DNA from: Podarcis erhardii
Lineage: Eukaryota
Length of the DNA stretch: 64,000 nt
Assembly: GCA_964252035.1 (NCBI GenBank)
Contig: OZ176212.1
Strand: one strand, 5' to 3'
Shown: piece after piece, positions 3,309 through 63,923 of the stretch
Position numbering within the stretch: position 1 is the first letter of the stretch
Layout of the letters: the number at the start of each line of letters is the position of its first letter
Translations under genes and position numbers: made by a program
The notes under the pieces: generated by a model
Database searches by the model: none
Told to the model about the DNA's origin: nothing
Seen by the model: the letters and a program-made list of their open reading frames with translations, nothing else

Positions 3309-4480
3309 ATGTTGGTGAGTCTGGAGGTGTTGTTATTGCTGCTGCTTGTAGCATGCAAAGTATATACTAATCAGTGCTTGATGAAGGAACCTTGCCCTGT
3401 TCCACATGAGTGGTATCAGCCAGCTGACCTCCTCATTGGTGAGATGACTTCTCAGATCTCCTACAATTTCCGTGAACTATTCTTCAGCGAGCCTCCTTGG
3501 GATATATTTGATGTACCAAAGTAAGGATTTGCTTCTTGTGAGCTTGGCCAGGGGTGCTAAAAGAATAGCTGGAATATAGGGGGGAACAAAATTGTAAATT
3601 GCTAGTGAAAAATAGAAAACTGCAGTTAAAAGGGGGAATATGAGAAGTAATTGGCCAACCTACAAAGAACTGATGGAAGAAAAAGATGATAGGCTAAAAT
3701 TATTATTTTTAAAAAAGAAATCTGAAATCACCTGACACTGGATGCAATATTTCCACTTGAATGAGACCTTCCAAAAAATAAATAAATCAGTTTTTTTCCA
3801 CAGAACCTTCGAGACTTGAAAAAAGATTTGATTTAAATTAAATATAAACCACTCTCTAAAATGTATAGGCTACTCCTTGACTGGGAGGTCAAGGGGGAAG
3901 AAGTCAAATCCGTAATGGTGCAGTAGTCCTGGAACTTTGGCTACAATATCCAAATGGAATCATGGGAGAGGTTTTGGAGGGAAGATATTACCGTATTTTT
4001 TGCACCATAACACTCACTTTTTTCCTCCTAAAAAGTAAGGGGAAATGTCTGTGCGTGCTATGGAGGGAATGCCTACGGGTGGCATGCCTACGGATTTTCC
4101 TCCTATAAAAACTACGTGCGTGTAATGGTCTGGTGCGTGTTATAGAGCGAAAAATACAGTAATTCATGACATGCTATGATTTAAGAGAGAAGTGCATATA
4201 AATGCTCTACAGGTGGTATTTAACACCTGTCAAGCTGTCCAAAATGTTCAGATCTAGGCCAAACACCTGTTGGAAATGCAGGGATAACCAAGAGGAGGCA
4301 AAGTTTAGTGTGCAGATAAAGAATGTAATCTGTTAAGCACAATGACCAGAGGTCATGTTGAATCCAGCTACAAATTCTTATATACAGCAAACACCAACTA
4401 TGGAATGAATGTTTGTTTATTTTTGTTTTTGTTTTTATTTTCTGTTGATTACTTATGTTACATAGTTTTTAAAACCAATA

Positions 4481-4520
<40 letters not shown>

Positions 4521-7500
4521 AAGAAAACTGCATATTGGAATAATATTTTTTTAAAAAACCTGAGAGAATATAAAGCAACAGATTCTACCAGCACTAGTTT
4601 TTANNNNNNNNNNNNNNNNNNNNNNNNNNNNNNNNNNNNNNNNNNNNNNNNNNNNNNNNNNNNNNNNNNNNNNNNNNNNNNNNNNNNNNNNNNNNNNNNN
4701 NNNNNNNNNNNNNNNNNNNNNNNNNNNNNNNNNNNAGGTTTGGACATCATGGTGCGTGCAGCTCTGGAATAGTGCAATGATACTTATCCTGCTATAAAAC
4801 TAACACTAATACTAATGATAAATGGAAAAGAAAATATTGGCATCATAATTATTGTTACATTTTAGGCAAAGGAAGCCAGGGTAGAGGATTATTGCTCTAT
4901 ATCTGCTCGTTGCACTGAGGAATTCCCTTCCAAAAGAGTACTTAACTTTCTTTACAGTGTTGTGACAAAGTACTACCAGCATATCTTGTCCTTGGTGTTT
5001 GCCATCAACGAGATCAATAAGAATCCAATGATCTTGCCCAATTTCACACTTGGGTTCCACATCTTTGACAGCTACTATGATGCAAGGCTAACGTATCATA
5101 CCACTCTTGAGCTGCTCTTCAAATCACAGACGTTTGTCTCCAACTACAGATGTGACACCCGGAAAAAGATCATATCCATCATTGGCGGACTTGGCTCTGA
5201 TGTCTCTTTCCGTATGGCAGACATATTGAGTCTCTACAAGATTCCACAGGTAGGCTTTATACATGGATGGATGGGAGATATTCACAAATTGTATTGTTCT
5301 TTTGGAATGCTGAGAATGATTTTGAAAGATAGAAGAAGGAGAGGAATGGCAGAGAGAAGATTAGTCTTACCTGTTGTTGTTTTTTTAAAAAAAGAACCAG
5401 AACCAGAATAGCATAAAGTAATGCAGCTGAAAGAGGAAGTACAGGATCATGCATTATGCTTTGATGAGACATATGACAGTTCTCCTGAAATTGTATCATA
5501 CTTTGTCAATTTTAGCAAACTGAGCCACGAGGGCCCCTAAGTGTAATTCTTGAAAAATCTGTATGCTTGATCTGCAAATGTTCCTTATTTTCCTAGGCAT
5601 GTGCATTGAGATGCACCAACTAAAATATGTGTACCTTCTCTTTTAGCTCACTTATGGCTCAGTTATCCCAGAGGAAAGAGAGAAGACGAGGATAGCTTCC
5701 TTTTACAGCATGGTCCCAAATGAAGCCCATCAGTACATGGGAATTATTAGCTTGCTTAAACATTTTGGATGGACATGGGTTGGGCTGTTTGCTGTGGATG
5801 ATGATAATGGAGAACATTTTATGCAGGCTCTGGAATGGTTGCTTTCTCAGAATGGGATGTGCTCAGCCTTCACTCAAAAAATCCCCAACCAAAACAATAT
5901 GAATACTATTAATGAGATCAATGATATAGTCTCAGATATTTATCTAGCTTTCACAGAGAGCAAAGCCAATACATTTGTTATTTATGGTGGATCCATGACT
6001 ATTCTGTGGCTAAATACGTATGTATTCCTAGGATTTCCTGGATATAAGGAAGATAGATCGTTTGGAAAGGTGTGGATTGTGACCGCCCAGTTTGAATTTA
6101 CATTGACAGGTTTTGAGAGAGGCACTGATTTTCAGTTATTTGAAGGTGCTCTTTCTTTCAAAATCCACTCCAATGAGATTCAAGGATCCCAGCAATTCCT
6201 TCATACCATAAGACCAGGCTGGGCACAAGGAGATGGTTTTTTCAAAGTATTCTGGGAGCAAGCATTTGACTGTTTATTTCCAGATCCTGAAGAACCACTG
6301 GAGACTGATGGAAAATGTACTGGGAAGGAGAAGCTGGAGCGCCTTCCTAGGTTTGCTTTTGAAATGAGCATGAGTGGCCACAGCTACAGTATCTATAATG
6401 CTGTCTATGTCATAGCACATGCTCTGGAAGACATGTACTTATCTACATCCAAGGACATAGCAATGGCCAGAGGCAAGAGCCTTGAACATCAAGTTCTCCA
6501 GCCATGGAAGGTAATGAAATAATCTTAAATATGTAAACAGATTTGTACTGGGCTAGAGTGGTTCCAATGTTACTCTGCATGGATAATTGATATGATGGTG
6601 TTGTACATCTTACTCATTGGGGGGGATCACGTGTCATAATATCATGGAGCTGGGAGAGACATTGGAACTCATCTAATCCATCACTCAGTGATGAGTGTCA
6701 AACCAGACATGCAATATGGGAAGACCATAAGCAGGATGGTTATTAGTCTGACAAGGGAAGCTGCTCTGTGCCACACAGCAAATGGGTGCCACCCTCCCCT
6801 GGCTGGTAGTGAGTAAGACAAAAGCCAGAGAAGTGTGTGACAGAGCAGGACTAGAAGCAGGCAGAAGCCAGTGAGTGAGAGCCATGTTTGATTTTTGCTA
6901 GAAGCCAAGGCTGTGACTATGGAAGTAGCAAGACCTTCTGGGGAGCTAATGATGTGAGCCCATCCATTTTAAGCTCAGATTGTCTGTTGTTGTTTAGTCG
7001 TGTCCGACTCTTCATGACCCCATGGACCAGAGAACGCCAGGCACTTCTGTCCTCCACTGCCTCCCGCAGTTTGGTCAGACTCATGTTCGTAGCCTCGAGA
7101 ACACCGTCCAACCATCTCATCCTCTGTCATCCCCTTCTTCTTGTGCCCTCAATCTTTCCCAACATCAGGGTCTTTTCCAGGGAGTCTTCTCTTCTCATGA
7201 GGTGGCCAAAGTATTGGAGCCTCAGCTTCATGATCTGTCCTTCCAGTGAGCACTCAGGGCTGATTTCCTTAAGAATGGATACGTTTGATCTTCTTGCAGT
7301 CCATGGGACTCTCAAGAGTCTCCTCCAGCACCACAATTCAAAAGCATCAATTCTTCGGCGATCAGCCTTCTTTATGGTCCAGCTCTCGCTTCCATACATC
7401 ACTACCGGGAAAACCATGGCTTTTACAATACGGACCTTTGTTGGCAAGGTGATGTCTCTGCTTTTTAAGATGTTGTCTAGGTTTGCCATCGCCTTTCTCC

Positions 7501-10500
7501 CAAGGAGCAGGTGTCTTTTAATTTCGTGACTACTGTCACCATCTGCAGTGATCATGGAGCCTAAGGAAGTAAAATCTCTCTCTGCCTCCATTTCTTCCCC
7601 TTCTATTTGCCAGGAGGTGATGGGCCCAGTGGCCATGATCTTCGTTTTTTTGATGTTGAGCTTCAGATTGTCTATATGTGTGAATAAACGATACATCATA
7701 ATAGCACCAGGGTGTCAAACATGCCTCTATCCCACATGAATCCTCACACTGCTCAGAGATTGGTGTAGCATGAAGCAATACAACCATCTGTCTTGGGAGA
7801 TAATGGAGGAGTGTGTCCTTGGGGGTGAAGTCAAACTGTTGGCAGGTTGCAGCTTCTGCTGTGGTTGTAGAGACTGATAAGGGAGAGACATGGTTTGTTG
7901 CAGCTGGGGCAAGTGAAGGTGTTGGGTTGTGCACATATATCAGCATGTAGACTCCAACTTAGCAAATATTTATCCTTGCTTTTAGCCCAAAGTCTGCAAA
8001 GTGTTTATTCTTTGTTTGTTTTTCCCTCTTGTCCAACCAGCTCAACGCATTTTTGCAAGCTACTTCGTTCAACAACTCAGCTGGAGAAACATTGTCCTTC
8101 CACAATAGCAGGGAAATGGAGGGTGGATTTGATGTAATGAATGTGATCACATTTCCGAACAGGTCCTTCCAGAGAGTGAAAGTTGGAACTGTTCTTGAGG
8201 GGAAAGAATTACTCATTAACGAGGAGATAATAACATGGCCCAGGAGCTTCAATCAGGTCTGGATTCTAGGGTATTTTAATGGGTGTGTGTTCTCCATAAG
8301 GGCAGTGCAGGGTACCTGATATTCAACTTCAGGGATGGAGGCGAAGGATGGAGAACCTGAGACAGCCTCCCCACTACCAGACCAGTGTTGCTAGACTGCA
8401 GCTCCCCGGACCATTGGACTCTGGTACCTGGAGCTGAAGAGAGTTGGATCCCCCATGCCTGTTTTAGGTTTCAGCAGAGAAGATATTGATCATCAGGATA
8501 TTCCTGTTGAAGGCTCTTCAGATTTTGAATTTGCCAGATTAACACCCTCCTACATTTTTTTTTATTTTTTGCTTTTGAAACATTCTAACACACACAAGAG
8601 TAAGGAACAGCAGCCGTGCCAGATTTACATATAAGCTAAACAAGCTATAGCTTAGGGCCCCACTCTCTTGGGAGCCCCCCAAAAGTTAAAGGAAAAAAAC
8701 CTGGATGTACATTTCTAAAATATAAGATAAAAAAACAAATAAAATAAAACCTACATACAGCAACAGTGTTTTGTGTTGTGTAGGTTTCTATGATGTAAGT
8801 AAGCCTGCTCACCTACTCCCTAAAATGTCACTGGTTTGCTCATTTCTATATATAGGGTGCCTACATCCTGCTATTTTTAATTATTAGCAGCTTGCATCAT
8901 ATATTTACACCTATTATTATTTCAAGTCATAGCAATTTTCTAGAGACTAGATTATGAGTCTTTGTAAATTGTGTTTCTAAAGGAACTTTTGTTATTGCCA
9001 AAGGCCAATGTGTTTGCATTATTAGGTTTGTTATGAATAAAAAATAATTTCAAGTTAGAGGTTAATAATTATTTCGCTATTAATTTACTTCTTCTTAATT
9101 GTATTTCACTATTAATATACTTCTTCTTAATTGTATTTCGGTTCAACAATTACTTTGATAAAATACGTATTTTATCTAATGCAAATGGCTTTAGATACCT
9201 ATTAGGTCCATAAATTACCATATAGTATATATATGGCATATTACCATATAGCATATATTCAACACAAAAAACACCGACCATTTGCTGTTGACGAAGGACA
9301 GCTGGACATATAAAGGTCCCCATTACGTCCACTAGCTAAAGCCTCATCAAACCTAAATCCGTCACTGAACAGGAGTGAGAGAAATCATTGGGTTGAGTGT
9401 TGCTCCAGTTTCTACCTTCAACCAAACAGTATACTGCAAAACATAAGCTCTGATGTGCTGAGGATTTTTTTTTTTTGTAAATTGTGGCATTCGCATGTAA
9501 CATGCACAACGTTCCAAATTCTTCCATGCCAGTTCATCATGTGTTTATTGTTAGGGTAAATGTGACTATATATTTAAAGGCATCTCTTGTATCTAGTTTA
9601 GGAGGGAAGGTCAAGAAGGAGGCAGGGCTGGAGGCAGAAAGAGAAAGAAGCAAAAGGGGTGGGGGAGACCTGTTGTACATAGTCCTTTAATGAAACTGTT
9701 TCTTATTCAGCTCCTCTGAAAGCTCACCATTAGAGAAAATGACATTTACTGGGTAAATGAGCAGATGGGCATCCTACTAAGCTGTTCTTCAATCTTCATC
9801 TTTATGGGCAGGTGAAGCCTGTTTCTGTGTGTAGTGATTCTTGTCATCCCGGTTATCAGAAAAAAAGGAAAGAAGGAGAGAAATTTTGCTGTCATGATTG
9901 TGCATCATGTCCAGAAGGGAAGATTTCAACACAGAGAGGTAAGTAATGGGACCCTTCTGCCCCTCAAAGATTTCCAGTATTGTCAGTTCACAGCCAGTTG
10001 TTTGTGCTGCCGTAATTTTATTTATGGATTGCATCCCATATGTGATTTTATGTTTTAACCACCCTGAGACCTACAAATATAGGGCAGTATACATATTAAA
10101 TAAATAAATAATCCTATAAAGCATATTGATATGATTTACAACATAATAAGGCAAAGGTAAAGGTACCCCTGCCCGTACGGGCCATCCTTGACAGACTCTA
10201 GGGTTGTGCGCCCATCTCACTTAAGAGGCCGGGGGCCAGCGCTGTCCAGAGACACTTCCGGGTCACGTGGCCAGCGTGACAAAGCTGCATCTGGCCAGCG
10301 CAGCACACAGAAATGCTGTTTACCTTCCCGCCAGTAAGCGGTCCCTATTTATCTACTTGCACCCGGGGGTGCTTTCGAACTGCTAGGTTGGCAGGCGCTG
10401 GGACCGAGCAACGGGAGTGCACCCTGCCATGGGGATTCGAACCGCCAGGCCCTAGGCGCTGAGGCTTTTACCCACAGTGCCACCCACGTCCCATTACAAT

Positions 10501-11543
10501 ATAATAAAACATATCTAAAACAGTTACATATAGAAAAACAGCCAGATATATATATATAAGCATTTTTAAAAGAGAAGGTATATATACACATATGTATTTG
10601 GCACTGAGATGGCAATTCTTCTCATTTTTCAGATATGGATGACTGTTTCAAATGCCCCCAAAAGGAATACCCAAGCAGAGACCAAGATAAATGTATTCCC
10701 AAAACTGTAACCTTTCTGTCTCTTGAAGAACCTTTGGGGATCAGTTTAGCCTCTATTGCTTTTGCTTTTTCCCTGATCACAGTTTCAGTGCTAGGGATTT
10801 TTATTAAGCTGCAAGATACTCCCATAGTCAAAGCCAACAACCGGGACCTCACCTACATTCTCCTGTTCTCTCTCCTGCTCTGCTTCCTCTGTTCTTTACT
10901 CTTTCTTGGAAGACCTAACCAAGTGACCTGCTTTCTCCGTCAGCCTGCTTTTGGCATCATCTTCTCTGTGGCTGTTTCTTGTGTATTAGCCAAAACCATC
11001 ACAGTGGTTGTTGCTTTCGTGGCCACCAAACCAGGGTCTGGCATGAGGAAGTGGGTGGGGAAAAGACTGGCCAACTCCATTGTCCTTTCCTGCTCACTTA
11101 TTCAAGCAGGCATTTGTGTGGTGTGCTTAGCAATCTCTCCTCCATTCCCAGATCTGGACATGGAGTCCTTAACTGGACAGATCATAGTGGAATGCAATGA
11201 AGGTTCTGCCATCATGTTTTATCTTGTCCTGTGTTACCTGGGATTTCTAGCCATCATCAGCTTCACTGTGGCTTTCATTGCCAGGACCTTGCCGGATGCT
11301 TTCAATGAAGCCAAGTTCATCACCTTCAGTATGTTGATTTTTTGCAGTGTTTGGTTTTCCTTTGTTCCAACCTACCTGAGCACCAAGGGGAAATACATGG
11401 TAGCTGTGGAGATTTTCTCCATCATAGCCTCCAGTCTTGGGTTGCTGGTCTGTATCTTTTCCCCAAAATGCTACATTATTGTGTTGAGGCCTGATCTAAA
11501 CACCAAGGAGCAGCTAACAAGGAGAAAGAATCAGCGAATTTAA
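3309..11543 (+). CDS. Vmn2r: Vomeronasal type-2 receptor gene 1 (class C GPCR), six exons, about 873 aa, apparently intact
   Basis: Exons 3309-3520, 4958-5249, 5647-6510, 8041-8256, 9812-9938, 10633-11543, all GT-AG with matching phases; total 2622 nt. Features: signal peptide, VFT ([22 protein letters not shown]; MVPNEAHQY; HFGWTWVG), Cys-rich domain (CHPGYQKK...FCCHDC), 7TM (TPIVKANN; [14 protein letters not shown]). Family-level call only. Confidence 0.93.
3620..4290 (+). mobile_element. Degenerate L1/Tx1 ORF2 C-terminal fragment in V2R1 intron 1, split by a MITE
   Basis: Translations such as [22 protein letters not shown] and [16 protein letters not shown]...CWKC match the C-terminus of the L1 ORF2s at 34073-36034 and 60784-61527. 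Ends are approximate. Confidence 0.7.
3991..4159. mobile_element. Tc1/pogo-type MITE
   Basis: Imperfect terminal inverted repeats (ccgtattttttgcaccataa / ttatagagcgaaaaatacag) flanked by TA on both sides. Confidence 0.65.
4604..4735. other. Assembly gap (132 N) in V2R1 intron 1
   Basis: Run of N, next to a (GT)n microsatellite at about 4484-4514. Confidence 0.99.
6986..7662 (-). mobile_element. 5'-truncated RTE/BovB LINE in V2R1 intron 3
   Basis: Minus-strand ORF 7127-7699 ([11 protein letters not shown]...[20 protein letters not shown]...[10 protein letters not shown]) is an RTE RT C-terminus. (CAA)n-type tail. Target-site duplication tcagattgtct at 6975-6985 and 7663-7673. Confidence 0.92.
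10150..10492 (-). mobile_element. Sauria SINE
   Basis: (AAAGGT)n on + equals the (ACCTTT)n tail; body ...ctatttatctacttgcac...gctttcgaactgctaggttggcagg... is typical of Sauria SINE. Confidence 0.8.
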
Positions 11544-15009: not shown

Positions 15010-15497
15010 ATGTTTTTCTCAAAAATGATCACACTTCTTCTTCTGGTGCTGCTGCTTCTCCCTCTGAAGGAGTGCAAAATAGATGCCATGAAGTGTCCTG
15101 GAATGGACTCCTTCCCTGTTCCCCATGAGTGGCATCGTCTTGGAACCCTCCTCATTGGTGGGATTGCCTCTCAGATACTTTATATTTCTCCCAAACTTTC
15201 CTTCCAGGTATATCCTTCTCAGGAGCTGGGCTTTGAGTTTCCGATGTAAGGACCCCCTCTTTACATCTCATATCATTCAAGCCGGGAAATGTAGGGTTTG
15301 TAAAATACATCAACATCTACCTCAGCATATTTCTTTATTGCACAGTCATTAACACTTTCCAATTTTTACATTTGCAGTTTGTCTAACTATTTATCTGCCT
15401 ATCTACATATATGCTTAGAGTTCTTTGTCTAGTGTCTCTAGAGGGGAAAGTGGTTGTGGTGAACCATATTGAGTGGCATCAGGAAAAAAATGGGGAG

Positions 15498-15541
<44 letters not shown>

Positions 15542-18500: not shown

Positions 18501-19073
18501 ATTTTTCTGTAACATTCATTTTAAGGAGATGGAACTTTCAAATATTTGATGGCACAATATCATTTGCAATTCACTCGAATGAGCCTCATGGGTTCCGCAC
18601 ATATATCCAGAACAAAAAAAATTATCCTCCCAAAGAAGATGGATTTTTCAAGGTTTTCTGGGAGCAGGCATTTGAATGTTCTTTTCCAAATCCCAGGTTG
18701 CCAGCAAAGTTGAGCATAACATGTACTGGAGAAGAGAGACTGGAGAGCCTTCCCAGGTCTGTGTTTGAAATGAGCATGACTGGCCACAGTTACAATGTCT
18801 ATAATGCTGTCTATGCCATAGCTTATGCGCTGCATGCCATGGAATCCTCTTGGATCAAATACAGAGCAGTGATGGGGTTTGCAAGGCTTGACCTTCGCAG
18901 TGTTCAACCTTGGCAGGTAATATTTCCTCAGTGAAATGGCTTCATTATAATGAAGTAATCAGCATGAAATGAAAGAGCATGTCTCATCAATGTAGTGATT
19001 CATTTCTTGTTGTCATTCTTATTGGCTTGTGCCCAAAGGACCTTATAACAATGTTCTTCACTCTTGGGTCCTC

Positions 19074-19114
<41 letters not shown>

Positions 19115-24830: not shown

Positions 24831-24880
<50 letters not shown>

Positions 24881-50560: not shown

Positions 50561-53500
50561 ATGGTGGTGTTAGTGGTGTTTCTGCTTCTGCTGCCCCACA
50601 TGGTGTGCAAAGTAGATACCCTGAAATGTCCAACAAATGACCCCCTTCCTGTTCCCCATGAATGGTATGAGCCTGGGGACCTCCTCATTGGTGCCATCTC
50701 TTCTCAGATCATCTTCTTTTTCCCTGAAGTGTCCTTCGAACAACATCCTTCTAATGATTTGGGCTTCGATCTTCCAAGGTAAGATACCTTCCATCCCATA
50801 TCAGGTAAGACAGATTAGAAATTGTAAGAAATAGACACCTATAAGCAATATGTCAACATCAGACATCTCTATTCAGTTATTTACATTTCTTAAATTTCGT
50901 CCTTCAGTCCCAAATGGGGCATTGTGGTGTTGGAGGACAAATTGTCATTCATTATCCATGTCAATGTGATCCATCGTTTTAATTTATTTTATCCCCTCCC
51001 CCCACCCACATTTCTTCCATCTTCCCCATAACCAACCGTCTTTTTCTATAGTTCTCAAGCATTGTTGAGTTTGTTCTGCTAATTCCCCCCCCAAAAAATG
51101 GTGGTGGGAACTTGATGGTCTTGCATGGCTGAATTAGACTGCTTTACAGAAAGCCTGAACAGAAATGTATTGTGACAAAACAATTTCTTTTGCTTTAGAA
51201 TTCTCCACTGAAAGAAAATGTAACTCTCATTGCAGTGTAGTGACAAAGTCTTACCAGCATGCCTTGGCCTTGACATTTGCTGTAAACGAGGTCAACAAGA
51301 ACCCAAAAATCTTGCCCAATGTCACACTTGGGTTCCACATCTGTGACAGCTACTATGATGCAAGGATGACCTACCGCACCACTCTGGACCAGCTCTTCAA
51401 TTCACATAGATTTATCCCCAACTACAAATGTGGCACTCAGAAAAAACTCATAGCTGTCATTGGGGGAATGAGCTCTGATATTTCTTTCCACATGGCAAAC
51501 ATCTTAACTCTCTACAAGATTCCACAGGTAACATCTGTTCATGGAGAAGATATGCTCACCTCTTGTCATCCTGTTACTGCCTTTGTGGTTCAGGAAGAGG
51601 CTGAAAATGACTTGCAGAAAAACAAAGCCTTATTGGATATTGAAAAAGCAAGACCCAACTTTTCCAAGAGTAGGACCCCTTCTTTTGCATGTAATTAAAT
51701 CCCTGAGTTATAAAAGCTTCTATAAGCACCCAGGACAGCTCTGGCACCACTTTCATTTCTGTGCAAAGATTCTGGAAAGGTAAGTGAGGGGTTTTTGCCC
51801 ACCACAAATTGCAACCCATCTCTAAACTATCTGTACATTTTCTTTCAGCTCACATTTGGCTCATTTGCCCCAGAGGAAAGTAGCACAAAGAATTCCCCTT
51901 CCTTTTACCACATGGTCCCAAGCGAAACCCATCAGTACAGTGGGATTATCCAGTTGCTTCAACATTTTGGATGGACCTGGGTTGGGCTCCTAGCTGCTGC
52001 TGATGACAGTGGAGACCACTTCTTGCAGATCCTGGAGCCACTGCTTTCTCAGCACGGGATATGTTCAGCTTTCACAGAAAGGCTCCAGAAACAAGGACGA
52101 TTCATTTCCCTTGATATTCTGAGCGATATGGCATCAAACATTTATCATTCTTTCATGGATAGAAAAGCTAGAGCAATTATTATCTATGGTGAAAGCATGA
52201 CCCTTCTGTGGCTGAGCACTTTAGTGCCAATAGCAGATCTGGAATATGAAAGAAATATATCTGTTGGGAAGGTCTGGATTACAACAGCCCAGATTGATTT
52301 TTCAGTAACAGGCTTTATAACACGTAGTAATTTTCAAATATTCCAGGGGGCTATTTCTTTTGCTATACATGCAAGTGGACATCCAGGATTCCAGGCTTAT
52401 CTTCACAACATAAAACCTTATTGGAGACGAGGAGATGGTTTTCTCCAAGGATTTTGGGAACAAGCATTTGGATGTACATTTTCCAATCCCAGCATAACAC
52501 TGGAGGTAGATAGACCATGTATTGGACAGGAGAGGCTGGAGAGTCTTCCTGGACCTGTTTTCGAAATGGACATGACAGGTCACAGTTACAGTGTCTATAA
52601 TGCTGTCTATGCTGTGGCACATGCTTTGCATTCGAGGAACTCATCTACATTGAAAGATAGAGTGATGGTGGGGAGGAAAAGTTCTGAATTTCAAGATCTC
52701 CAGCCTTGGCAGGTAATGTTGTCACCACAGAATGTCTTCATTGCCAGGAATGCATTCATACATAGAGAAAAAAAACATCAAAATGTGTCCTCCTTGAATA
52801 CCTGTAGAAATTATGCACATATTAATGACTGAGAAAGCCATGGGGGTTCACATTTCTACCTATACGTGGAGCATGGGAAAAGTGAGCTGCAAATTTCTAG
52901 TCTTTCACCACTGCAATAGTGTTACTTGCCTCACCCGCTCTGTCAGTGAGTAATTTGGGGGCTGATTTGCACATCTCTCCAGCCATCAAGCCACCCAATA
53001 GTGTGGGAAGACCTGATCACCTGTTATGTCAGCCATCTGGGAATGCTTTGCTTCATTGGGTGAGAATGGATACATAGCCGTTTTTCACCTATGATGTACT
53101 AACTTGGAGAAAACTCTTATTTGAAGACCATCATCTGTATGTAGCTTCATGCCATGCAGATAGAATGTGAGTAGAGGGGGAAGAAAAATGAAAACAACAT
53201 TTGGTGAACCTGCTAAGGCATCTTGGACATCAGAGGATGGTTTCATCAAAGCTTCTCCTGAAAGGACAGGAGACTAGAAGAGATGGGGACAAGATCTATG
53301 CAGGGTCTTGGTGGCGCACCCATACTAAGCTTCAAGGTCTCGTTATATATTTGATGTGGGCAGACCTTTCCCAGCACATCAGTTATTTTAAACTAATGTC
53401 TCCTTTCCCCCTCTCAATTAGCTCCACCAATTTCTTCAAGGCACTTCATTTAACAATGCTGCTGGGGAAACAGTGACTTTTAATAATAAAGGGGAATTGC

Positions 53501-56500
53501 TTGCAGGATTTGATTTAACCAATATGGTCATATTTCCAAACATCTCCTTTCTTCGAGTAAAGGTGGGACAAGTGAATCCCAATGCCTTTGAGGGGAAAGA
53601 ATTCACCATCAATGAATCATCAATTGTGTGGAGCAGAAATTTTAACCAGGTTGTGTATTCTTGGGCATATGGGTGTGTGTTTGTGCAGCAGAATGGATGA
53701 TATTGGGGCTGTATGCTTCCTTTGGTGAAGCCTACAACAACTCTTACATTCCCATTATCACCTATCCCAATAACACATTTGTATACTAAACAGCTCCAGT
53801 GCTGGTTCACAAAAATGTTAACATACAGAATGCAAGCGATAATTCCACACATTAAATCACAACAGCAAAAACTCCATCTAAAATCTGTATGAACACATAA
53901 ACAGTTTAAGGACAACATGAAACTGTCCAAAGGAAACTTGGTGGGAAATGCTGAAGCACCAGAAGGGAGAGAACAGTAAGGTATTCAAGAAGATGCTTAC
54001 TGTTAATATTGTTTGGGCAAAGCAAAACTCTTTGGAGAGGAGAATCAATAAGTGGGGTGCCACCACCAAGTAGGCCCTCTCCTCTGCTTCATTTTATTAG
54101 CTGGGACAGGGTCATGGGAAAGGGCCTGCAAAGAATGATTATCTAAGCAACCTGGAGGGGGGGGAGTAATTTAGGGCTTTAACAGTTAAACACTGAAAAT
54201 GGATTGTGAACAGCTCTACCAAGATCAGTCTGTACAGTGGTACCTCGGGTTAAGTACTTAATTCATTCCGGAGGTCCGTTCTTAACCTGAAACTGTTCTT
54301 AACCTGAAGCACCACTTTAGCTAATGGGGCCTCCTGCTGCCGCCGTGCCGCCAAAGCCCAATTTCTGTACTTATCCTGAAGCAAAGTTCTTAACCTGAAG
54401 CACAATTTCTGGGTTAGCGGAGTCTGTAACCTGAAGCGTATGTAACCCGAGGTACCACTGTATCAATAAAATGTGAAACTGCCAATAGCATGATATCATT
54501 TTGCAAATTTATGGTGTGTCCACACTAAGAATATTGTGTGCATTTATAATGCACATAGTGATGGCTACCCATTTAAATAGTTTGAAGTGGGATTAGACAG
54601 ATTCATGGAGGATATGACTTTCAATCTGCTAAACATGTTGGCTTTGTTCTACTAACAGTGTTAGAAGCAGTGTGTCTTTGGATTTATGCTGCTGTTAATC
54701 ATAAGTGAGGAGAGTGTTGTTGCATTCAGGTCTTGCTTGTGGTCTTCTCATGGGCATCCAAGTGGCTACCATGCAAACATGATGCTGGTTTAGATGGGAC
54801 TTTGCCCTGACCTTGAAGGACTCTTATTAAGTGAAAAATATATATGTTGCTCACAACTATTTTGTACAGAAGTGAAGCACTCATGAAGAATAAAATTTTG
54901 TTGGGCTGTGGGAAAGTCTGAAGAAAGTTGTTTATGGTCACCAACAAACTGGTCAAAACAGTTCCTATTGGATAAAGTACCTGTGGAGCAGTTAATGTCA
55001 TTTCATTAATTGTTAGGTTGCCTTCAACCAATGGCATTTGCCGCCATGATTAGGAAAGAACTAGCTAAATCATGCCATCAGCCATGTTTTGCATTATTCT
55101 GTGCTGACTGATCAATTGTTTCCTTGTATAGCAGTTATTGAACAAAAACATTCTGAATTTATCTGATTGTCCTGTTTATTGATAGGTACCTCCTGTTTCT
55201 GTCTGCAGTGCCTCCTGCCGCCCTGGCTATCAGAAGAAAAAGAAGGAGGGGGAGAAATTTTGCTGCTACGACTGTGCTCAGTGCGCAGAAGGGAAGATTT
55301 CACACCGAAAGGGTGGGTGATGTATTGCTGCAAATATGACCAGTGTAAATGGAGATTAAATTTCATGCAATATATCTTACAGGTAAAAGATTAATGGAAT
55401 GTGACTACATATGCACATTGGGATTTTCATAGGTCAAGGTTAGTTTACACAGTCCAGAGTCATCAAGTGATGGGGGGGGGGAATGCTAAAAGCTATGGTA
55501 AATGCATGTGTGAACCACCCCTTTGCTGAAGAATTGGGAACTTGGTTGTACCAAGGACAATAAATGACTCAAAATTGTATTTTCCTGTATTTTCCTTTAT
55601 ACAGTATGAAGATGTGTTGTCTAAAAAAAGAAAAGCTCTCCAATCCCTTTAAAAGAGATGGATGAATCTTAAATTCAGTTTGCCACATCACATCAATCTC
55701 AAATTACTATTTTTTCCTAACATTTTATAAGAATTTTTTTTTTTGTGTGTGTGTGTGTGTGTAGTATTTATGTTTGATATTTTAGTGGTATTTTCCTCTG
55801 TTACTTGGAAATGTTAATTAACATAGATGCAGATGGTGAACAAGGATAAGCAGAAGAATAGTTAGATAATACTAAAATGCCTTTCTTCAAGACCAGCTCT
55901 CACACTGGGAACTAAGGGTCAGAGACTGCCAGGTCAAAGATCCATGGGACAAAAGAAAAACCTCAGTCAACAACAGAATAAGCATAGTTATGTGAGCAAC
56001 ATTTTTTTTTCCCCATCAGACATGGATGACTGTTTCAGATGCCCAGAAAACGAGTATCCGAACAAAGATCAAGAAAGATGCCTCCCCAAGATTATAAATT
56101 TTCTCTCTTTTGAAGAACCTTTGGGGATCAGCTTTGCTATGGTTGCTGCTTTTTTAGCAGTGATCACAGCTTTAGTGTTTGTGATTTTTATTAGACACAA
56201 AGATACTCCCATAGTCAAAGCCAACAACCGGGATGTCACCTATACCCTGCTCATCTCTCTGTTGCTCTGCTTCCTCTGCTCATTATTGTTTCTTGGACAA
56301 CCAAGTAAGGCGACCTGCTTTCTCCGTCAATCTGCTTTCGGCACCATCTTCTCAGTCGCTGTTTCCTGTGTGTTGGCCAAAACTGTCACTGTGATTCTCG
56401 CTTTCATGGCTACAAAACCAGGTTCCAACATGAGGAAGTGGGTGGGTAGAAGACTGACCAACTCCATTGTCTTCTCCTGCTCTCTTATTCAAGCAGGTAT

Positions 56501-56921
56501 CTGTGTAGTGTGGCTCGCTATCTCTCCCCCATTCCCAGACTTTGACATGGTATCATTAACCAAAATCATAGTAGCCAAATGCAATGAAGGTTCTGTCACC
56601 ATGTTTTATCTTGTCCTGGGCTACATGGGACTGTTGTCTATCATTAGTTTCACAGTGGCTTTTCTAGTAAGGAAACTGCCAGACACTTTCAATGAAGCCA
56701 AGTTCATCACCTTCAGCATGTTGGTGTTTTGCAGTGTTTGGTTGTGCTTTGTCCCAACCTACCTGAGCACCAAGGGGAAATACATGGTGGCTGTGGAGAT
56801 CTTCTCTATATTGGCCTCCAGTGCTGGGCTACTGGGCTGTATATTTTCCCCAAAATGCTACATTATTCTGCTGAGGCCTGACATGAACAGCAGGGAGCAG
56901 CTAATAAAGAGGAAAATATAG
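50561..56921 (+). CDS. Vmn2r: Vomeronasal type-2 receptor gene 3, six exons, about 876 aa, apparently intact
   Basis: Exons 50561-50778, 51236-51527, 51849-52712, 53422-53649, 55186-55312, 56020-56921; GT-AG with compatible phases; total 2631 nt. Internal exon sizes (292/864/228/127) are identical to gene 2. Confidence 0.93.
54235..54460. mobile_element. Tigger/pogo-type MITE
   Basis: TIR cagtggtacctcgggtt / aacccgaggtaccactg with TA flanks. Confidence 0.88.
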
Positions 56922-57851
56922 AGCATCAACTGCCCTTTTATATATATTCCCAATGTGGTATTAATGGAATGGATATCATGGGGCTTATTCAAGACTTCTG
57001 CTTGGGTTGTTACTATATATGCAAATAGATTTTGTTTTGTTCATACATCCTAAGTAACCTAAACCAATATGTGAAAAGTTTATATAACTGAGAAGTGAAG
57101 AATAAAATCTCTCGTTTATTCTTGTTCAGAAACCGATTTATTTTCTTTTTGTTCTGATGTTCTACTACAGGAAGTTCAAATTAGATAACCGGTGCTTTTT
57201 TCCTGGTTTCTAATATTCCTGTTGCATTTGGGACTGCAGCTTTTTAAATAAATAAACAACCATGCCATGCTAAATTTCATTCATGCCAGTGTGATACAAC
57301 ATCAGATAACATTGGGAACCACCATTTAAGTGCATGCAAGGTTCTGTTGCTTTATCATTCAATCAAGAACAAAAAGTGGTATTTCAGAATTCTTCCCTAA
57401 ATTTCATCACATTATGTAATCCATTAATACAGTGGGAAAATTATAGCTCAAATCTGCCACAATCTTCTGAGCTAACAGAGTTGCAAACATGCAAATAGAC
57501 ATTTCATGGAAGCAATCAATATAGGAATGAGTACTAAACAACAACAAGATTCTCCTTGATTACCAGAATTGAATTTTGCACTGTATAAAAGATCACATAA
57601 GAAGTGGAACTTAGCAGGAAATGAATTGCTGGAGAAATAGAATAAAGTGGTGTCTGAATGTAGCCTAGGCTTACTCTGAGTGTTCCATTTTGAACAATAG
57701 ACATGCCTCATTTGTGTCAACAAAATCCATACAATTTATCTTTCCTCTCCACACTTCTTCATATAGTATTTTGCGGCTGCAGCTGAACCAGTCCAGACAA
57801 CTGGCAAAGGAAGGTTTTTGTCTGGCTTCAGATTCACTTCCTTTCACTGTG

Positions 57852-58298
57852 TCTCTTGTACAGTAATAAACAGCAGTGTCCTCTGATTTCAAACTATTCA
57901 TTTGCAGATACAGCATGTTTGAAGGGTTGTCTCTGGAGATGGTGAAACGCCCTTTCACTGAGTCTGCATAATATTGTTGGTTACCACCAGGCCATATTAT
58001 TGCAACCCATTCCAGTCCTTTTCCAGGAGCCTGTCGCACCCAGTTCATTTCATAGCTGCTGAAGGTGAATCCAGAAGCTCGACAGGAGAGGCGGAGGGAC
58101 TCTCCAGGCTTTTTGACATCCCCTCCAGACTCTACCAGCTGGACTGCTGATTGGACACCTAGAAAAGGAGGAAAGCCATATTTAAAAGATCTGCTACATA
58201 TGAAGCCCTACATTATACTAGTCATCTTTGTTCAAAGAAGGAATAAAATTACCTCCCAAAACTGCTGAAACAAAAAGAAACTGAAGCCAAAGTGTCAT
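57852..58298 (-). CDS. IGHV: Conventional clan-III-like IGHV segment V14 (apparently functional)
   Basis: 46-nt leader 58253-58298 ([15 protein letters not shown]). Exon 57852-58158 reads [49 protein letters not shown]...[16 protein letters not shown]...YYCTRD. RSS: CACAGTG 57845-57851, 23 bp, ACAAAAACC 57813-57821. Confidence 0.95.
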
Positions 58299-58392
58299 GT
58301 TTGTCTCCTGATTTTGCTCTGAGAGGAACTGACTGGAAAGTGGTTCAGCAGTTCTACCTCTGGCTGTAGGCTGGGCAGAGAGTGTGCTGCTG

Positions 58393-58424
58393 CTTTAAAG
58401 AGGAAGCTGCCTCTGCATTTACAT
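58393..58424 (-). promoter_or_regulatory. VH promoter elements of V14: octamer variant ATGTAAAT and TATA-like TTTAAA
   Basis: atttacat at 58417-58424, about 120 bp upstream of the ATG, and ctttaaag at 58393-58400. Repeated at +817 and +1634. Confidence 0.6.
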
Positions 58425-58670
58425 GCAGCTCAGGATAAAAGAGCAACGCAGGTCTTTGACTGAGCAGATCTGTTTAGCCTTATACCAAACATACGACTTA
58501 CAGACACTACTTTTCAGGGACAGTCCCAGATTTACTGTTTAAAAGTGATCCCTATTGTAAGAGAGTTGTTGCTGCCAAGCTAGTAGAGATAACGCTCCAG
58601 GCACACAGCCATTTCTGCCTTGTTGATTTATTACTAAAAGTTCAAAGCAGTTACAAGAGTTCAAACAAAC

Positions 58671-59013
58671 TCTTTTGAAGAACCTTTGGGGATCAGCTTT
58701 GCTATGGTTGCTGCTTTTTTAGCAGTGATCACAGCTTTAGTGCTTGTGATTTTTATTAGATACAAAGATACTCCCATAGTCAAAGCCAACAACCGGGATG
58801 TCACCTATACCCTGCTCATCTCTCTGTTGCTCTGCTTCCTCTGCTCATTATTGTTTCTCGGACAACCAAGTAAGGCGACCTGCTTTCTCCGTCAATCTGC
58901 TTTCGGCACCATCTTCTCAGTCGCTGTTTCCTGTGTGTTGGCCAAAACTGTCACTGTGATTCTCGCTTTCATGGCTACAAAACCAGGTTCCAACATGAGG
59001 AAGTGGGTGGGTA
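58671..59013 (+). pseudogene. Vmn2r: V2R exon-6 fragment copy 1 (TM1-TM3)
   Basis: [11 protein letters not shown]...[10 protein letters not shown]...NMRKWVG, copied from gene 3 exon 6; no upstream exons. Confidence 0.92.
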
Positions 59014-59487
59014 CATATGAAGCCCTACATTATACTAGTCATCTTTGTTCAAAGAAGGAATAAAATTACCTCCCAAAACTGCTGAAACAAAAAGAAACTG
59101 AAGCCAAAGTGTCATGTTTGTCTCCTGATTTTGCTCTGAGAGGAACTGACTGGAAAGTGGTTCAGCAGTTCTACCTCTGGCTGTAGGCTGGGCAGAGAGT
59201 GTGCTGCTGCTTTAAAGAGGAAGCTGCCTCTGCATTTACATGCAGCTCAGGATAAAAGAGCAACGCAGGTCTTTGACTGAGCAGATCTGTTTAGCCTTAT
59301 ACCAAACATACGACTTACAGACACTACTTTTCAGGGACAGTCCCAGATTTACTGTTTAAAAGTGATCCCTATTGTAAGAGAGTTGTTGCTGCCAAGCTAG
59401 TAGAGATAACGCTCCAGGCACACAGCCATTTCTGCCTTGTTGATTTATTACTAAAAGTTCAAAGCAGTTACAAGAGTTCAAACAAAC

Positions 59488-59830
59488 TCTTTTGAAGAAC
59501 CTTTGGGGATCAGCTTTGCTATGGTTGCTGCTTTTTTAGCAGTGATCACAGCTTTAGTGCTTGTGATTTTTATTAGATACAAAGATACTCCCATAGTCAA
59601 AGCCAACAACCGGGATGTCACCTATACCCTGCTCATCTCTCTGTTGCTCTGCTTCCTCTGCTCATTATTGTTTCTCGGACAACCAAGTAAGGTGACCTGC
59701 TTTCTCCGTCAATCTGCTTTCGGCACCATCTTCTCAGTCGCTGTTTCCTGTGTGTTGGCCAAAACTGTCACTGTGATTCTCGCTTTCATGGCTACAAAAC
59801 CAGGTTCCAACATGAGGAAGTGGGTGGGTA
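59488..59830 (+). pseudogene. Vmn2r: V2R exon-6 fragment copy 2 (TM1-TM3)
   Basis: Same as copy 1 except one visible substitution (KATC to KVTC). Confidence 0.92.
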
Positions 59831-60469
59831 CATATGAAGCCCTACATTATACTAGTCATCTTTGTTCAAAGAAGGAATAAAATTACCTCCCAAAACTGCT
59901 GAAACAAAAAGAAACTGAAGCCAAAGTGTCATGTTTGTCTCCTGATTTTGCTCTGAGAGGAACTGACTGGAAAGTGGTTCAGCAGTTCTACCTCTGGCTG
60001 TAGGCTGGGCAGAGAGTGTGCTGCTGCTTTAAAGAGGAAGCTGCCTCTGCATTTACATGCAGCTCAGGATAAAAGAGCAACACTGGTCTTTGACTGAGCA
60101 GATCTGTTTAGCCTTATACCAAACATACGACTTACAGACACTACTTTTCAGGGACAGTCCCAGATTTACTGTTTAAAAGCGATCCCTATTGTAAGAGAGT
60201 TGTTGCTGCCAAGCTAGTAGAGATAACGCTCCAGGCACACAGCCATTTCTGCCTTGTTGATTTATTACTAAAAGTTCAAAGCAGTTACAAGAGTTCAAAC
60301 AAACGTGTCCATGCTTACATGCTTAACTCAGTCAGATTTCTGAGATTCTCGACTGAAGATTTGTGACGTCTTTTTGCCCAGCATGCCCATCGGTGCAGGG
60401 CACTCCTCCTACTTCCTTTGTTCTGTGAGTAGCTAGTTCTGGGGACTGGTTGCCCCCTCCCTATTTCTT

Positions 60470-62150
60470 TCTTTTTTTTTTCTCAGATGAAGTATATATT
60501 TTTTATATATATATAATTTTTTTAATGATTTTCCAATTTTTAAAACAAAATAGCATACAAACATCGACAAACAAAAACATACAAACAAGTATAATTTCAT
60601 ATCCTCATTTTCATAAGCCTTCTTTCTCGGACTTCCCCATACCTCACCCTTACTGCATCCTTGTTTTACAGTTTTTCAGCAACCCTTTACTCCAATTAAA
60701 TTATAACTTATTCTTTCTCAGTTTCATCTTAATTCATCAAACAGTTTCAGCTGTAATTCTGCATCTTCCTTTCCCTTGACATTTTAGCACTCATCAATTT
60801 TATAACAGTTCTTAAGATAAGCTTTAAATTTCTTCCAATCTTCCTCCACCGTCTCTTTCTCTTGGTCACGGATTCTGCCAGTCATTTCTGCCAATCCCAT
60901 AAAGTCAATCACTTTCGTCTGCCATTCTTCCAGTGTAGGTAATTCTTGTGTCTTCCAATACTTTGCTAGAAGAATCCTTGCCGCTGTGGTAGCGTACATA
61001 AAAAAAGTCTTGTCCTTTCTTGACACCAATTGGCCGACCATGCCCAAAAGAAATGCCTCTGGTTTCTTATGAAAAGTACATTTAAGTACCTTCTTAATTT
61101 CATTATAAATCATTTCCCAAAAGGCTTTAATCTTTGGGCAGGTCCACCAAAGGTGAAAGAAGATACCTTCAGTCTCATTACATTTCCAGCATTTATTATT
61201 GGGCAAATGGTAAATCTTCGCAAGCTTGACTGGGGTCATGTACCACCTATAAATCATTTTCATAATATTTTCTTTTAAGGCATTACATGCCGTAAATTTA
61301 ATGCCGGTGGTCCATAACTGTTCCCAGTCAGCAAACATAATGTCATGACCAATGTCCTGTGCCCATTTAATCATAGCTGATTTAACTGTCTCATCTATTG
61401 TATTCCACTTCAGCAACAAATTATACATTCTTGATAAATTCTTAGTATTGGGTTCTAACAATTCTGTTTCTAATTTCGATTTCTCCACCTGGAAACCAAT
61501 TTTCCTGTCTTGTTTAAAGGTCTCCATTATTTGATAATAATGGAGCCAGTCTCATACCTTGGACTTTATTTTCTCAAAACTCTGTAGTTTAAATTTACCA
61601 CTTTCTTGCTCTAAGATTTCAAAATATTTTGGCCATTTAGATTCCATATTAAGTTTCTTCACCTCCTTGGCCTCCATTGGTGATAACCACCTAGGAGTTT
61701 TATTTTCCAACAAGTCCTTATATCGAATCCAAACATTGTATAATGCTTTCCTAACAATATGGCTTTTAAAACCTTTATGAACTTTAACCTTGTCATACCA
61801 TATATATGCATGCCAACCAAATCTATTGTCAAATCCTTCCAAGTCCAGAATATCTGTGTTCTCAAGAAGTAGCCAGTCTTTCAACCAGCAGAAAGCTGCC
61901 GATTCATAGTACAGTCTTAAGTCCGGCAGGGCAAACCCCCCTCTATCTTTTGTGTCAGCTAATATCTTAAATTTTATTCTGGGCTTTTTGCCCTGCCAGA
62001 CAAATCTAGTTATATTTTTCTGCCACTTCTTGAAACAGTCTAGTTTGTCCACAATTTGTAATGTCTGAAACAAAAATAACATTCTAGGCAATACATTCAT
62101 TTTGATCACAGCAATTCGACCTAACAAGGAAAGCTTCAAATTCGATCATA
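60470..62150 (-). mobile_element. 5'-truncated L1/Tx1-clade LINE, same family as 33786-36872
   Basis: ORFs 61552-62139 and 60784-61527 are in frame, separated by one TGA (CGA in the other copy). A-rich tail. 20-bp TSD ttgccccctccctatttctt at 60450-60469 and 62151-62170. Confidence 0.95.
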
Positions 62151-62519
62151 TTGCCCCCTCCCTATTTCTTCCTCTGAGTCAGATGACAGACTGCTAATGA
62201 GCTCTTTAGACTCTCGGTAATTACCTCTCACCCCCCTCATCTCTCTAGCCATCTCCCTTTCCCTGACACCTATTCCTTATTTGATCCCAGAATGTTCCAC
62301 TTTTCCTTAGGACATCCCTATTTTCATCAGAGAAATGTTGGAAGGTGTGGACTTGGGACCAGGCCCATACAGAGGTTAAGTGAGTCCTGGGGTGGAAGTC
62401 TTGTTAGAATAAAATTATCAACTCAAACAAAAATGAATTGGTCCCTGGCACCCACCATACCTGTTGTTTCTAAGGGAATCCCAATGCAGCATCTCAACAT
62501 CCGCCTATCAGTTCAACAT

Positions 62520-62625: not shown

Positions 62626-63433
62626 TCTATTTTAAAAAATTATATACTGCCCTTCATCATAAAATCTCAGGATGGTTCACAAGATAGAAGCACAAATAAA
62701 TGATCCAAACAGAAGCAAAAAACCAGTAATCCCCCCCTCCCACAAAAACGTCTACAAGGCTGTATAATATCCATTAGTCAAGGACCTGGTTGAAGCCAAT
62801 GTGAGCCATCCTGTAATTTTCAGATGAGGGGTGGAGTAGAAAAATAAAAATGAGAGTGATCTTGATTTATCCCAGCTATGCTCAATTCTGAGGGTTCAGG
62901 CATCATGTCAGAAAATGGTCTGTTTTATTTCCAACCAAATTAACATGACTATCCCCTTCTGTCCATTACACTGATGGTGTGCCAGGAACAATAAGTCCTA
63001 CATTGCGTCATATACACACAAAGCAGGAAAGTGGGACTGCAAAGTTGGAAACAGGGACACTCTGGAGCAAAGTGGATTGAAACAGTCCACCTCTCTCTCC
63101 CTGAAAGTGGCTAACATGCTGCTGCAACATCTATCTACCTGCCATGGCAATTTGCCTCACCTCACCTAGGAACAGATGCACTCTGTATGCCCACCTGCAC
63201 TTTCCCTTTCAGGATCAAGGGGAATAGAGGTGGCATTGCCTGCCTCTCCTGCTGTGCTTTCCTGAAGATTCTGACTATTCAATGTGGGGGAAAGAAGCCT
63301 GAATTAGGTGGAGCCTTGGTCTCAAAAGTCCAAATATCTTCTAGTGTCCTGACTCATGTCCCTGCTCCTTGTTTCCACCATCAGTTGTGTCCTACAGGAA
63401 CAAACTGGAGCACTGCCATGAGCAAGAAGAGGC

Positions 63434-63461
63434 TGTTTTTGCCAGACTTCCTCTCACTGTG
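63434..63461 (-). other. 12-RSS of V15: CACAGTG - agaggaagtctg (12 bp) - GCAAAAACA
   Basis: Heptamer 63455-63461, spacer 63443-63454, nonamer 63434-63442. No nonamer-like sequence at the 23-bp position (63423-63431 reads CTCTTCTTG on -). Confidence 0.85.
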
Positions 63462-63923
63462 TAAGCTTGCACAGTAATACATAGCTGTGTCCTCTGCTTT
63501 CAGATTGTTCATTTGCAGATACAGCATGGCTGATGGGTTGTCCCTGGAGATGGTGAAGCGTCCTGTCACAGAGTTGTCATAGTATATTTCTCCACTATCA
63601 TAGCGTATCCATGCCACCCATTCCAGTCCCTTCCCAGCAGCCTGTCGCACCCAGCTCATCCAGTAGCTGCTGAAATCGAAGCCAGAAGCTCGACAAGAGA
63701 GGCGTAGAGACTCTCCAGGTCTTTTGGTGTCGCCTCCTGATACCTCCAGTTGGTACTGTGATTGAATACCTGTAAAGCAAGAGATATTATAAAGTGCTAA
63801 TCTTATTGATTCATGACTAATCAATAAACTGCAAGTGTGTCCTTCCATGCTGGAGGATTATTAATTGTAATATTGACCTCTGAAGACTGCCAGGAAACAA
63901 ACTAATTGAAGTAAAGGAATCAT
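63462..63923 (-). CDS. IGHV: Clan-III-like IGHV segment V15, intact reading frame, with a 12-bp-spacer RSS
   Basis: 46-nt leader 63878-63923 ([15 protein letters not shown]) with GT donor. Exon 63462-63769 reads [99 protein letters not shown]. Confidence 0.93.

Follow-up and report, generated by a model that had tools for sequence, protein, structure and literature searches.

Antigen-receptor loci are usually described as pure arrays of V (variable), D (diversity), J (joining), and C (constant) genes, the textbook exception being the trypsinogen genes within TRB, the T cell receptor beta locus; in mammals, clusters of olfactory receptor genes adjoin the T cell receptor alpha/delta (TRA/TRD) locus. 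In deletional V(D)J joining, genes located between the V segment in use and the D-J genes are lost from that allele in lymphocytes. The human TRB locus contains 8 trypsinogen genes, that of the mouse 20, and that of cattle 5, and the synteny of these genes is conserved (PMC2685407). The immunoglobulin heavy-chain (IgH) V regions (IGHV) of Anolis and snakes comprise several families of V segments (VH), with functional genes as well as pseudogenes, and have undergone recent tandem duplication within the V region (bioRxiv 10.1101/002618). The stretch of DNA analysed here, a window of 64,000 nucleotides (64 kb) from the lacertid lizard Podarcis erhardii (contig OZ176212.1 of assembly GCA_964252035.1), contains VH segments interleaved with genes for vomeronasal type-2 receptors (V2R), and it is probably a germline IgH V region in which V2R genes are long-term residents, the two families working, in the same reading, probably independently of each other.

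As at TRB, genes other than antigen-receptor genes lie between V segments and the association is conserved across species, an unrelated multigene family being found among and downstream of the V segments; the squamate case differs in that the locus is IgH, the guests are chemoreceptors, and these are scattered through the V array on the opposite strand. The olfactory receptors at TRA/TRD share with it the position of a chemoreceptor cluster next to an antigen-receptor V array, but they lie beside the V segments and not between them, and they are single-exon class A receptors instead of six-exon class C V2Rs. The reptile IGHV arrays (bioRxiv 10.1101/002618) have in common with this locus the recent tandem duplication in the V region and the mixture of functional genes and pseudogenes, whereas no non-immunoglobulin genes are mentioned there and three intact V2R genes plus V2R debris are present here in 64 kb. 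The V2R genes themselves are of the type known from the squamate repertoire ('vomeronasal type-2 receptor 26-like'), namely six-exon class C genes with ANF_receptor, NCD3G, and 7tm_3 domains.

The interleaving of VH and V2R genes is apparently undescribed, a statement that is provisional: no account of such an arrangement was found in the literature combining vomeronasal or V2R with IGHV, IgH locus, or squamate, of which the coverage is incomplete. In particular, the term 'immunoglobulin heavy' was not found in a paper on squamate V2Rs (PMC3590772), 'immunoglobulin' is absent from a paper on rattlesnake chemoreceptors (PMC12400810), and V2R genes go unmentioned in the survey of immunoglobulin loci by the Vertebrate Genomes Project (VGP).

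VH segments and V2R genes of the window

The order along the window is V2R1, V2R2, one V segment, a V2R relic, 12–13 V segments, V2R3, one V segment, V2R fragments, and a last V segment (Table 1); the V2R genes are all on the plus strand, the VH segments all on the minus strand, and the two families alternate. An initial annotation, made from the letters of the sequence, had proposed this order, the alternation on opposite strands, and the presence of functional-looking members in both families. The order was confirmed by exon homology and by tblastn, in which the queries were VH sequences derived from the window itself, with one tiny fragment added to the 15 V segments first listed; the alternation holds for 16 of 16 VH-like stretches and for the three V2R genes, and six VH with full signals and three V2R with intact frames are found. 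The tblastn E-values range from 1e-20 to 1e-111, except for the short fragments Ve (5e-22) and Vh (4e-4). The six functional-looking segments (Vb, Vg, Vi, Vj, Vl, and Vo) are characterized by an octamer-like element, a split leader, an open V exon, and a consensus recombination signal sequence (RSS) with a 23-bp spacer (23-RSS). Three more (Vd, Vk, and Vp) combine an open V exon with atypical signals, and the other 7 of the 16 are pseudogenes or fragments, due to stops or a frameshift in Va, Vc, Vf, and Vm, with Ve, Vn, and Vh existing as fragments.

The VH segments contain a V-set domain (Pfam, 4e-16), among the structures of the PDB they come closest to heavy-chain variable domains of antibodies and to VHH, and 'Immunoglobulin heavy variable', 'Ig heavy chain V-III region', and 'HV323' are among the names carried by their database matches. 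The hallmarks Cys23, WVRQ.PGKGLEW, and YYC (YYCAR in the main family) can be read in the segments. The anatomy of the main family was obtained from the alignment of 13 units, Vo and Vp forming a separate, clan-III-like family. The leader is split; its exon, 49 nt long in the main family and 46 nt long in Vo and Vp, ends in phase 1 and is joined in frame across a short intron by means of a GT donor and an AG acceptor; the leader splice of the Podarcis lilfordi gene model P0001 is exactly the splice deduced for the VH of the window. A conserved sequence that matches 7 of the 8 positions of the octamer ATGCAAAT (ATGCAAAG or ATGCAAAA; in Vo, ATGTAAAT) is located in nearly all units about 110–130 nt upstream of the ATG of the leader, as a putative promoter element.

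An RSS scan revealed seven perfect CACAGTG-23-ACAAAAACC signals and one with an 8/9 nonamer; based on the length of the sequence, a perfect 16-base match with fixed spacing is estimated to occur by chance about 3e-5 times per 128 kb. Perfect 23-RSS are present in Vb, Vf, Vg, Vi, Vj, and Vo; the nonamer of Vl matches at 8 of 9 positions, and Va has a perfect nonamer with the heptamer CGCAGTG. The RSS of Vp has a 12-bp spacer (CACAGTG-12-GCAAAAACA, 63423-63461, minus strand), a length that, in an alignment with Vo by eye, suggests the loss of 11 bp from a 23-bp spacer; with such a spacer the 12/23 rule would be broken for D joining, but a partner with a 23-RSS could be joined directly. P0039, a database protein that belongs to the same VH family as the segments of the window, is a rearranged V-D-J product with the C-terminus WGQGTLVTVTT. 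The domain, the heavy-chain PDB matches, the split leader, and the 23-RSS together characterize the V segments of the window as genuine IgH-type germline V genes, as the initial annotation had maintained.

Other identities were considered and rejected. The NCBI label 'M1-specific T cell receptor beta chain-like', carried by the VH models of P. lilfordi, is a misnomer, as sequence, RSS type, and PDB matches all lead to IgH V. A new squamate T cell receptor chain is not supported, since the 'epsilon' V genes described in squamates are TRAV/TRBV-like and the segments of the window are VH; VH-delta segments of a TRD locus were likewise discarded, given that squamates are reported to lack TRD (both from bioRxiv 10.1101/2023.09.04.556186). 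A weak RSS-like motif with a 12-bp spacer, CACAATG-12-AAAAAGACC, recurs beside Vd, Vf, and Vj (plus strand, 30697, 33537, and 42406). These sites were rejected as D segments, as they occupy equivalent positions in paralogous copies of one repeat unit and have weak nonamers; most likely, the motifs are a by-product of the repeated unit.

The three V2R genes have exons of 212–236, 292, 864, 216–228, 127, and 902–911 nt, which were defined by exon homology, the conserved 127-nt exon 5, frame translations, and junction sequences. Every junction is GT-AG, the intron phases are 2/0/0/0/1 in all three genes, and in-frame stops are absent. Exon 4 of V2R1 (8041-8256) has 216 nt and is thereby four codons shorter, in frame, than the 228-nt exon 4 of V2R2 and V2R3. 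Domain and homologue searches, performed exon by exon, identified in all three genes the Pfam domains ANF_receptor (1e-16 to 1e-27) and 7tm_3 (1e-83 to 4e-87), the values for V2R1 being 1e-21 and 8e-83, respectively; the cysteine-rich exon 5 is readable in the V2R genes, and NCD3G is annotated on their homologues. The best matches are squamate V2R models with 70–99% identity; exon 6 of V2R1 is 99.3% identical to a V2R model of P. muralis and 95.3% to one of Zootoca. Among the best 120 matches to V2R2 exon 6, those with a specific name come mostly from squamates and are without exception called 'vomeronasal type-2 receptor 26(-like)'; the nearest relatives are V2Rs, as opposed to CaSR, taste T1R, or GPRC6A. 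Between this exon and the P. lilfordi orthologue there are 14 synonymous and 5 non-synonymous substitutions, and the resulting ratio of non-synonymous to synonymous rates (dN/dS), 0.10, shows that V2R2 exon 6 is under purifying selection, a measure that does not indicate the site of expression.

The assembly contains a gap of 132 N at 4604-4735, inside intron 1 of V2R1, between donor 3520 and acceptor 4958. The gap is crossed by no reading frame, continuity being needed there only to link exon 1 with exons 2–6 of V2R1, and the phases on its two sides are compatible, as in V2R2 and V2R3. A (TG)n microsatellite and an A-run at 4485-4603 immediately precede the gap and may be the cause of the assembly break.

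Table 1. Features of the 64-kb window of P. erhardii; CDS, coding sequence; CDR1, complementarity-determining region 1; FR3, framework region 3; LINE, long interspersed nuclear element; ORF, open reading frame.
Feature	Position	tblastn match	Strand	Structure and signals
V2R1	3309-11543		+	Intact, six exons: 3309-3520, 4958-5249, 5647-6510, 8041-8256, 9812-9938, 10633-11543; CDS 2622 nt
V2R2	15010-23345		+	Intact, six exons: 15010-15245, 16513-16804, 18053-18916, 19201-19428, 21804-21930, 22444-23345; CDS 2649 nt
Va	23919-24587	23919-24347	-	Pseudogene about 0.6 kb past the V2R2 stop codon; in-frame TGA; heptamer CGCAGTG; from the alignment of units, leader 24433-24481 and octamer-like element 24580
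V2R exon-6 relic, 3' part	25360-25789		+	Between Va and Vb; by exon homology
Vb	26358-26971	26282-26740	-	Functional-looking; open V exon; octamer-like element 26964; leader 26801-26849; perfect 23-RSS, heptamer start 26396
Vc	29233-29788	29233-29694	-	Stop codons; RSS damaged
Vd	30293-30782	30293-30688	-	V exon open; heptamer kept, nonamer lost
Ve	31916-32189	31916-32083	-	Truncated after CDR1
Vf	33049-33622	33049-33528	-	Three stops; RSS perfect
LINE reverse-transcriptase ORFs	34073-36817		-	Inserted in the middle of the VH array, outside both gene families
Vg	37757-38434	37757-38206	-	Functional-looking; leader 38264-38312; perfect 23-RSS, heptamer 37859
Vh		39694-39771	-	78-nt FR3 fragment
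Vi-Vl block	40408-45631		-	
Vi		40408-40872	-	Leader 40922-40970; perfect RSS 40510
Vj		41918-42397	-	Leader 42443-42491; V exon 42036-42336; perfect RSS 42035
Vk		43171-43638	-	V exon open; 22-nt leader deletion; heptamer CATACTG
Vl		44934-45413	-	Leader 45463-45511; heptamer 45051; nonamer ACAAAAACA
Vm + Vn block	46536-48321		-	
Vm		46536-47018	-	Pseudogene; frameshift; heptamer CATACTG; 5' part replaced
Vn		47945-48221	-	Pseudogene; truncated; start codon lost
V2R3	50561-56921		+	Intact, six exons: 50561-50778, 51236-51527, 51849-52712, 53422-53649, 55186-55312, 56020-56921; CDS 2631 nt
Vo	57813-58431	57812-58198	-	Intact, clan-III-like; V exon 57852-58158; perfect 23-RSS, heptamer 57851; octamer-like ATGTAAAT at 58424; 46-nt leader 58252-58297
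Tandem repeat	58195-60304			Period 817 bp; 99.7% identity; by self-comparison
Two V2R exon-6 pieces	58670-59013, 59487-59830		+	344 nt each; 99% identical to V2R3 exon 6 (56105-56448)
Related LINE copy	60500-62152		-	Between the tandem repeat and Vp
Vp	63384-63923	63384-63848	-	Clan-III-like; V exon open; 46-nt leader; promoter region cut by the window end

Conservation of the arrangement in other squamates

The best match of the VH segments (96%) is a P. lilfordi protein encoded on a 53.85-Mb chromosome, and the top three VH matches of this species are all on one chromosome. The corresponding locus of 20 kb (OX395138.1:44936322-44956787) comprises an array of VH, together with a V2R relic and a pseudo-VH, and a V2R exon 6 that is on the opposite strand. 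It is collinear with positions 21896-27507 of the window at 93–97% DNA identity through V2R2 exon 6, pseudo-VH, relic, and VH, and even the V2R relic is kept at the orthologous place (17283-17429 of the P. lilfordi locus). The stretch from V2R3 to Vo is present in sequencing runs of six related organisms from eight studies, with a best share of 0.73.

Outside lacertids, the flanks were sampled at ±10 kb, with one sample of 20–30 kb per species; the locus of Gekko kuhli was reached from the VH side, those of Tiliqua scincoides and Rhineura floridana from the closest relatives of V2R2. The Gekko kuhli sample (CM122952.1, 60.18 Mb) contains six VH of the same family as those of the window, three of which have a perfect 23-RSS; after them, on the opposite strand, come exons 6 and 4 of a V2R. 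In the skink Tiliqua scincoides (CM068528.1, around 131 Mb) five VH surround the V2R, two of them to one side of it and three to the other; they belong to several families and are all on the opposite strand. In the amphisbaenian Rhineura floridana a VH is located 8.6 kb upstream of a V2R, and one V2R is on the same strand as the VH. Lacertids, the amphisbaenian, the skink, and the gecko together span almost the whole squamate crown group. Since all four have VH and V2R in adjacency, the arrangement probably dates back to early squamates.

Turnover of the VH array around the V2R genes

The initial annotation had suggested that an IgH V domain and a V2R cluster had merged and expand together. 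This is not supported by the dynamics of the two families. The rates of synonymous divergence (dS) between the paralogues V2R1, V2R2, and V2R3 are 0.6–1.2 (exons 3 and 6), V2R1 has an orthologue in Zootoca, and the introns cannot be aligned between paralogues, save for a shared repeat of about 230 bp in intron 4 of V2R2 and V2R3. The VH units are 78–97% identical over 0.7–1.2 kb, with Vb and Vg reaching 95.4% over 1217 bp and Vd and Vj 96.6%, a divergence comparable to, or younger than, that between the species. A composite duplication unit made of V2R and VH was not found in the window, where all VH duplications are without V2R. On these comparisons, V2R1–3 are old paralogues and the VH units copies that duplicated recently and alone; the high dS of the V2R genes and the near identity of VH units duplicated without them point to a VH array with fast turnover around old V2R residents. 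The co-residence is old and probably passive, and not the outcome of a recent merger with joint expansion: the arrangement would have been inherited, the VH array being then remodelled by tandem duplication and decay and the V2R genes being kept by purifying selection.

Traces of contact between the two families are limited to the V2R relic and to a patch of exon 6, which show only occasional damage or copying of V2R sequence during VH turnover. The patch lies in the repeat at 58195-60304, where three copies of the 476-bp 5' flank of Vo, including putative promoter and leader, alternate with the two 344-nt exon-6 pieces; V2R3 exon 6, to which these pieces are 99% identical, is 2 kb away. The repeat is either a recent templated patch that was then duplicated or an assembly problem.

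The window also contains mobile elements. The two LINE copies, both with reverse-transcriptase ORFs, are 82.6% identical over 1.67 kb. A fragment of a Ty1/copia-like retrotransposon is located at 514-1892 (region 97-2600), with gag-pre-integrase, integrase core, and retroviral SH3-like domains, and a fragment of a Tc1/mariner-type DDE_3 transposase at 2253-2600, just upstream of V2R1. In the cobra Naja naja (SOZL01000099.1) a retroviral gag ORF with Gag_p10 and Gag_p24 is found 1.5 kb from a VH, at 19138-20322 of the sampled locus.

Explanations and consequences of the co-residence

In a conventional translocon locus the D, J, and C genes are downstream of the V segments and RAG joining is deletional. 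Should the locus of P. erhardii be of this type, with D-J-C toward lower coordinates, the VH segments, which all point in that direction, would be joined in B-lineage cells by RAG to the downstream D-J by deletion, and the intervening DNA, V2R genes included, would be looped out and lost from the rearranged allele. This somatic loss of V2R genes, which the initial annotation had already envisaged for B cells, would follow from the single orientation of the V segments and from deletional joining, and it requires D-J-C to be on that side. In particular, the use of any V of the window would remove V2R1 and V2R2, and that of Vo or Vp would also remove V2R3, in each case from the allele concerned. 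In vomeronasal neurons, transcription of the V2R genes, as of ordinary receptor genes with six exons, would come from the other strand.

Several observations weigh against a germline IgH V region with residents of squamate-wide age. No D, J, or C gene is present in the 64-kb window, and the VH array could be a secondary or orphon cluster. The extension to squamates as a whole is based on four families. Within ±10 kb, VH flanks contain VH and no V2R in the snakes Crotalus and Naja and the turtle Eretmochelys, and V2R flanks contain V2R and no VH in Eublepharis, Elgaria, the snake Liasis, and the turtle Emys, although blanks at such a distance are weak ones. Lastly, a protein tree of exon 6 groups V2R1–3 with those V2Rs of Rhineura, Tiliqua, and Gekko that adjoin VH, all in one broad squamate clade (support 92), in which the VH-adjacent genes are not resolved as an exclusive old lineage.

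If the VH had entered a V2R cluster as orphons or as a secondary cluster, with the true IgH locus elsewhere, they would have no link to D-J-C and would never be rearranged. The lack of D, J, and C genes agrees with this explanation, as do the 10 of 16 VH stretches that are pseudogenes, fragments, or bear atypical signals and the abundance of V2R genes on the same chromosome in related species. However, orphons that are not used are expected to decay, and here six VH keep the octamer-like element, the leader splice sites, the frame, and the 23-RSS, with seven RSS being perfect; moreover, the three best P. lilfordi matches share one chromosome, the Tiliqua V2R is ringed by VH of different families, as would be the case in the main IGHV region, and the same VH family occurs in a rearranged V-D-J protein. 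A working IGHV region is favoured over an orphon cluster because of the six complete genes, the multi-family VH around the Tiliqua V2R, and the rearranged protein P0039, the orphon origin being judged unlikely. A chimeric contig or collapsed repeats joining a V2R cluster to a VH cluster, an artefact against which the initial annotation had itself warned, is far less credible and can be put aside almost completely: the N gap and the 99.7%-identical tandem repeat are indeed regions where assemblers are prone to error, but the gap is within a V2R intron, away from any boundary between the families, the junctions from V2R2 through VH and relic to VH are collinear in the independent assembly of P. 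lilfordi, which makes a chimeric join in the window very unlikely and largely refutes this explanation, and the adjacency recurs in three further assemblies of other families (skink, amphisbaenian, and gecko).

A different kind of explanation attributes a function to the co-residence. In mammals, one or few V2R genes are expressed per neuron. The two families, both stochastically chosen and allelically excluded, might share chromatin or loop architecture, and selection would then keep their interleaving and opposite strands; antisense transcription through the VH from V2R promoters, or a silencing domain reused in neurons and pro-B cells, might be examples. The recurrence of interleaving and of a mostly opposite orientation in four long-separated squamate families, together with the constraint on V2R2 in its place, would fit such selection, but one Rhineura V2R is on the VH strand, and the synteny of trypsinogen genes in TRB is conserved with no coupling proposed (PMC2685407). 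Conservation alone is therefore no proof of function, as these genes of the mammalian TRB locus illustrate (PMC2685407), and selection for interleaving is considered highly doubtful. A bolder version, likewise improbable, is that V2R genes have been in the IgH V region since the squamate ancestor and that their presence is used, one chromatin domain being switched between neuronal choice and pro-B accessibility; the V2R promoters on the opposite strand might then add antisense transcription, or else boundaries of domains by which VH usage would be shaped. The two alternating regulatory regimes, an idea already contained in the initial annotation, are a matter of speculation. A germline IgH V region in which old V2R residents and VH segments are probably independent of each other, without functional coupling, remains the preferred reading.

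Different consequences would derive from these explanations. If the VH array were unlinked to D-J-C, the window would represent an unusually well-preserved orphon cluster, which would itself need an explanation. If the co-residence were used, squamates would be a natural system in which two stochastic and allelically exclusive mechanisms of choice act on one stretch of DNA. For genome annotation, counts of V2R and IGHV genes and locus boundaries in squamates should consider both families, also in view of the TCR-beta-like names given to VH by NCBI. With a lacertid IgH V region inhabited by V2R genes, the preferred reading, V2R genes should be removed in B cells by each V(D)J deletion that starts here, and the locus would allow one to see, in nature, whether a chemoreceptor cluster that is heterochromatic and a V domain accessible to recombination can occupy the same DNA and not interfere with each other. 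Squamates would thus provide a second case of a guest family in an antigen-receptor V region, in another locus and another lineage, with intact chemoreceptor genes distributed through an IgH V array.

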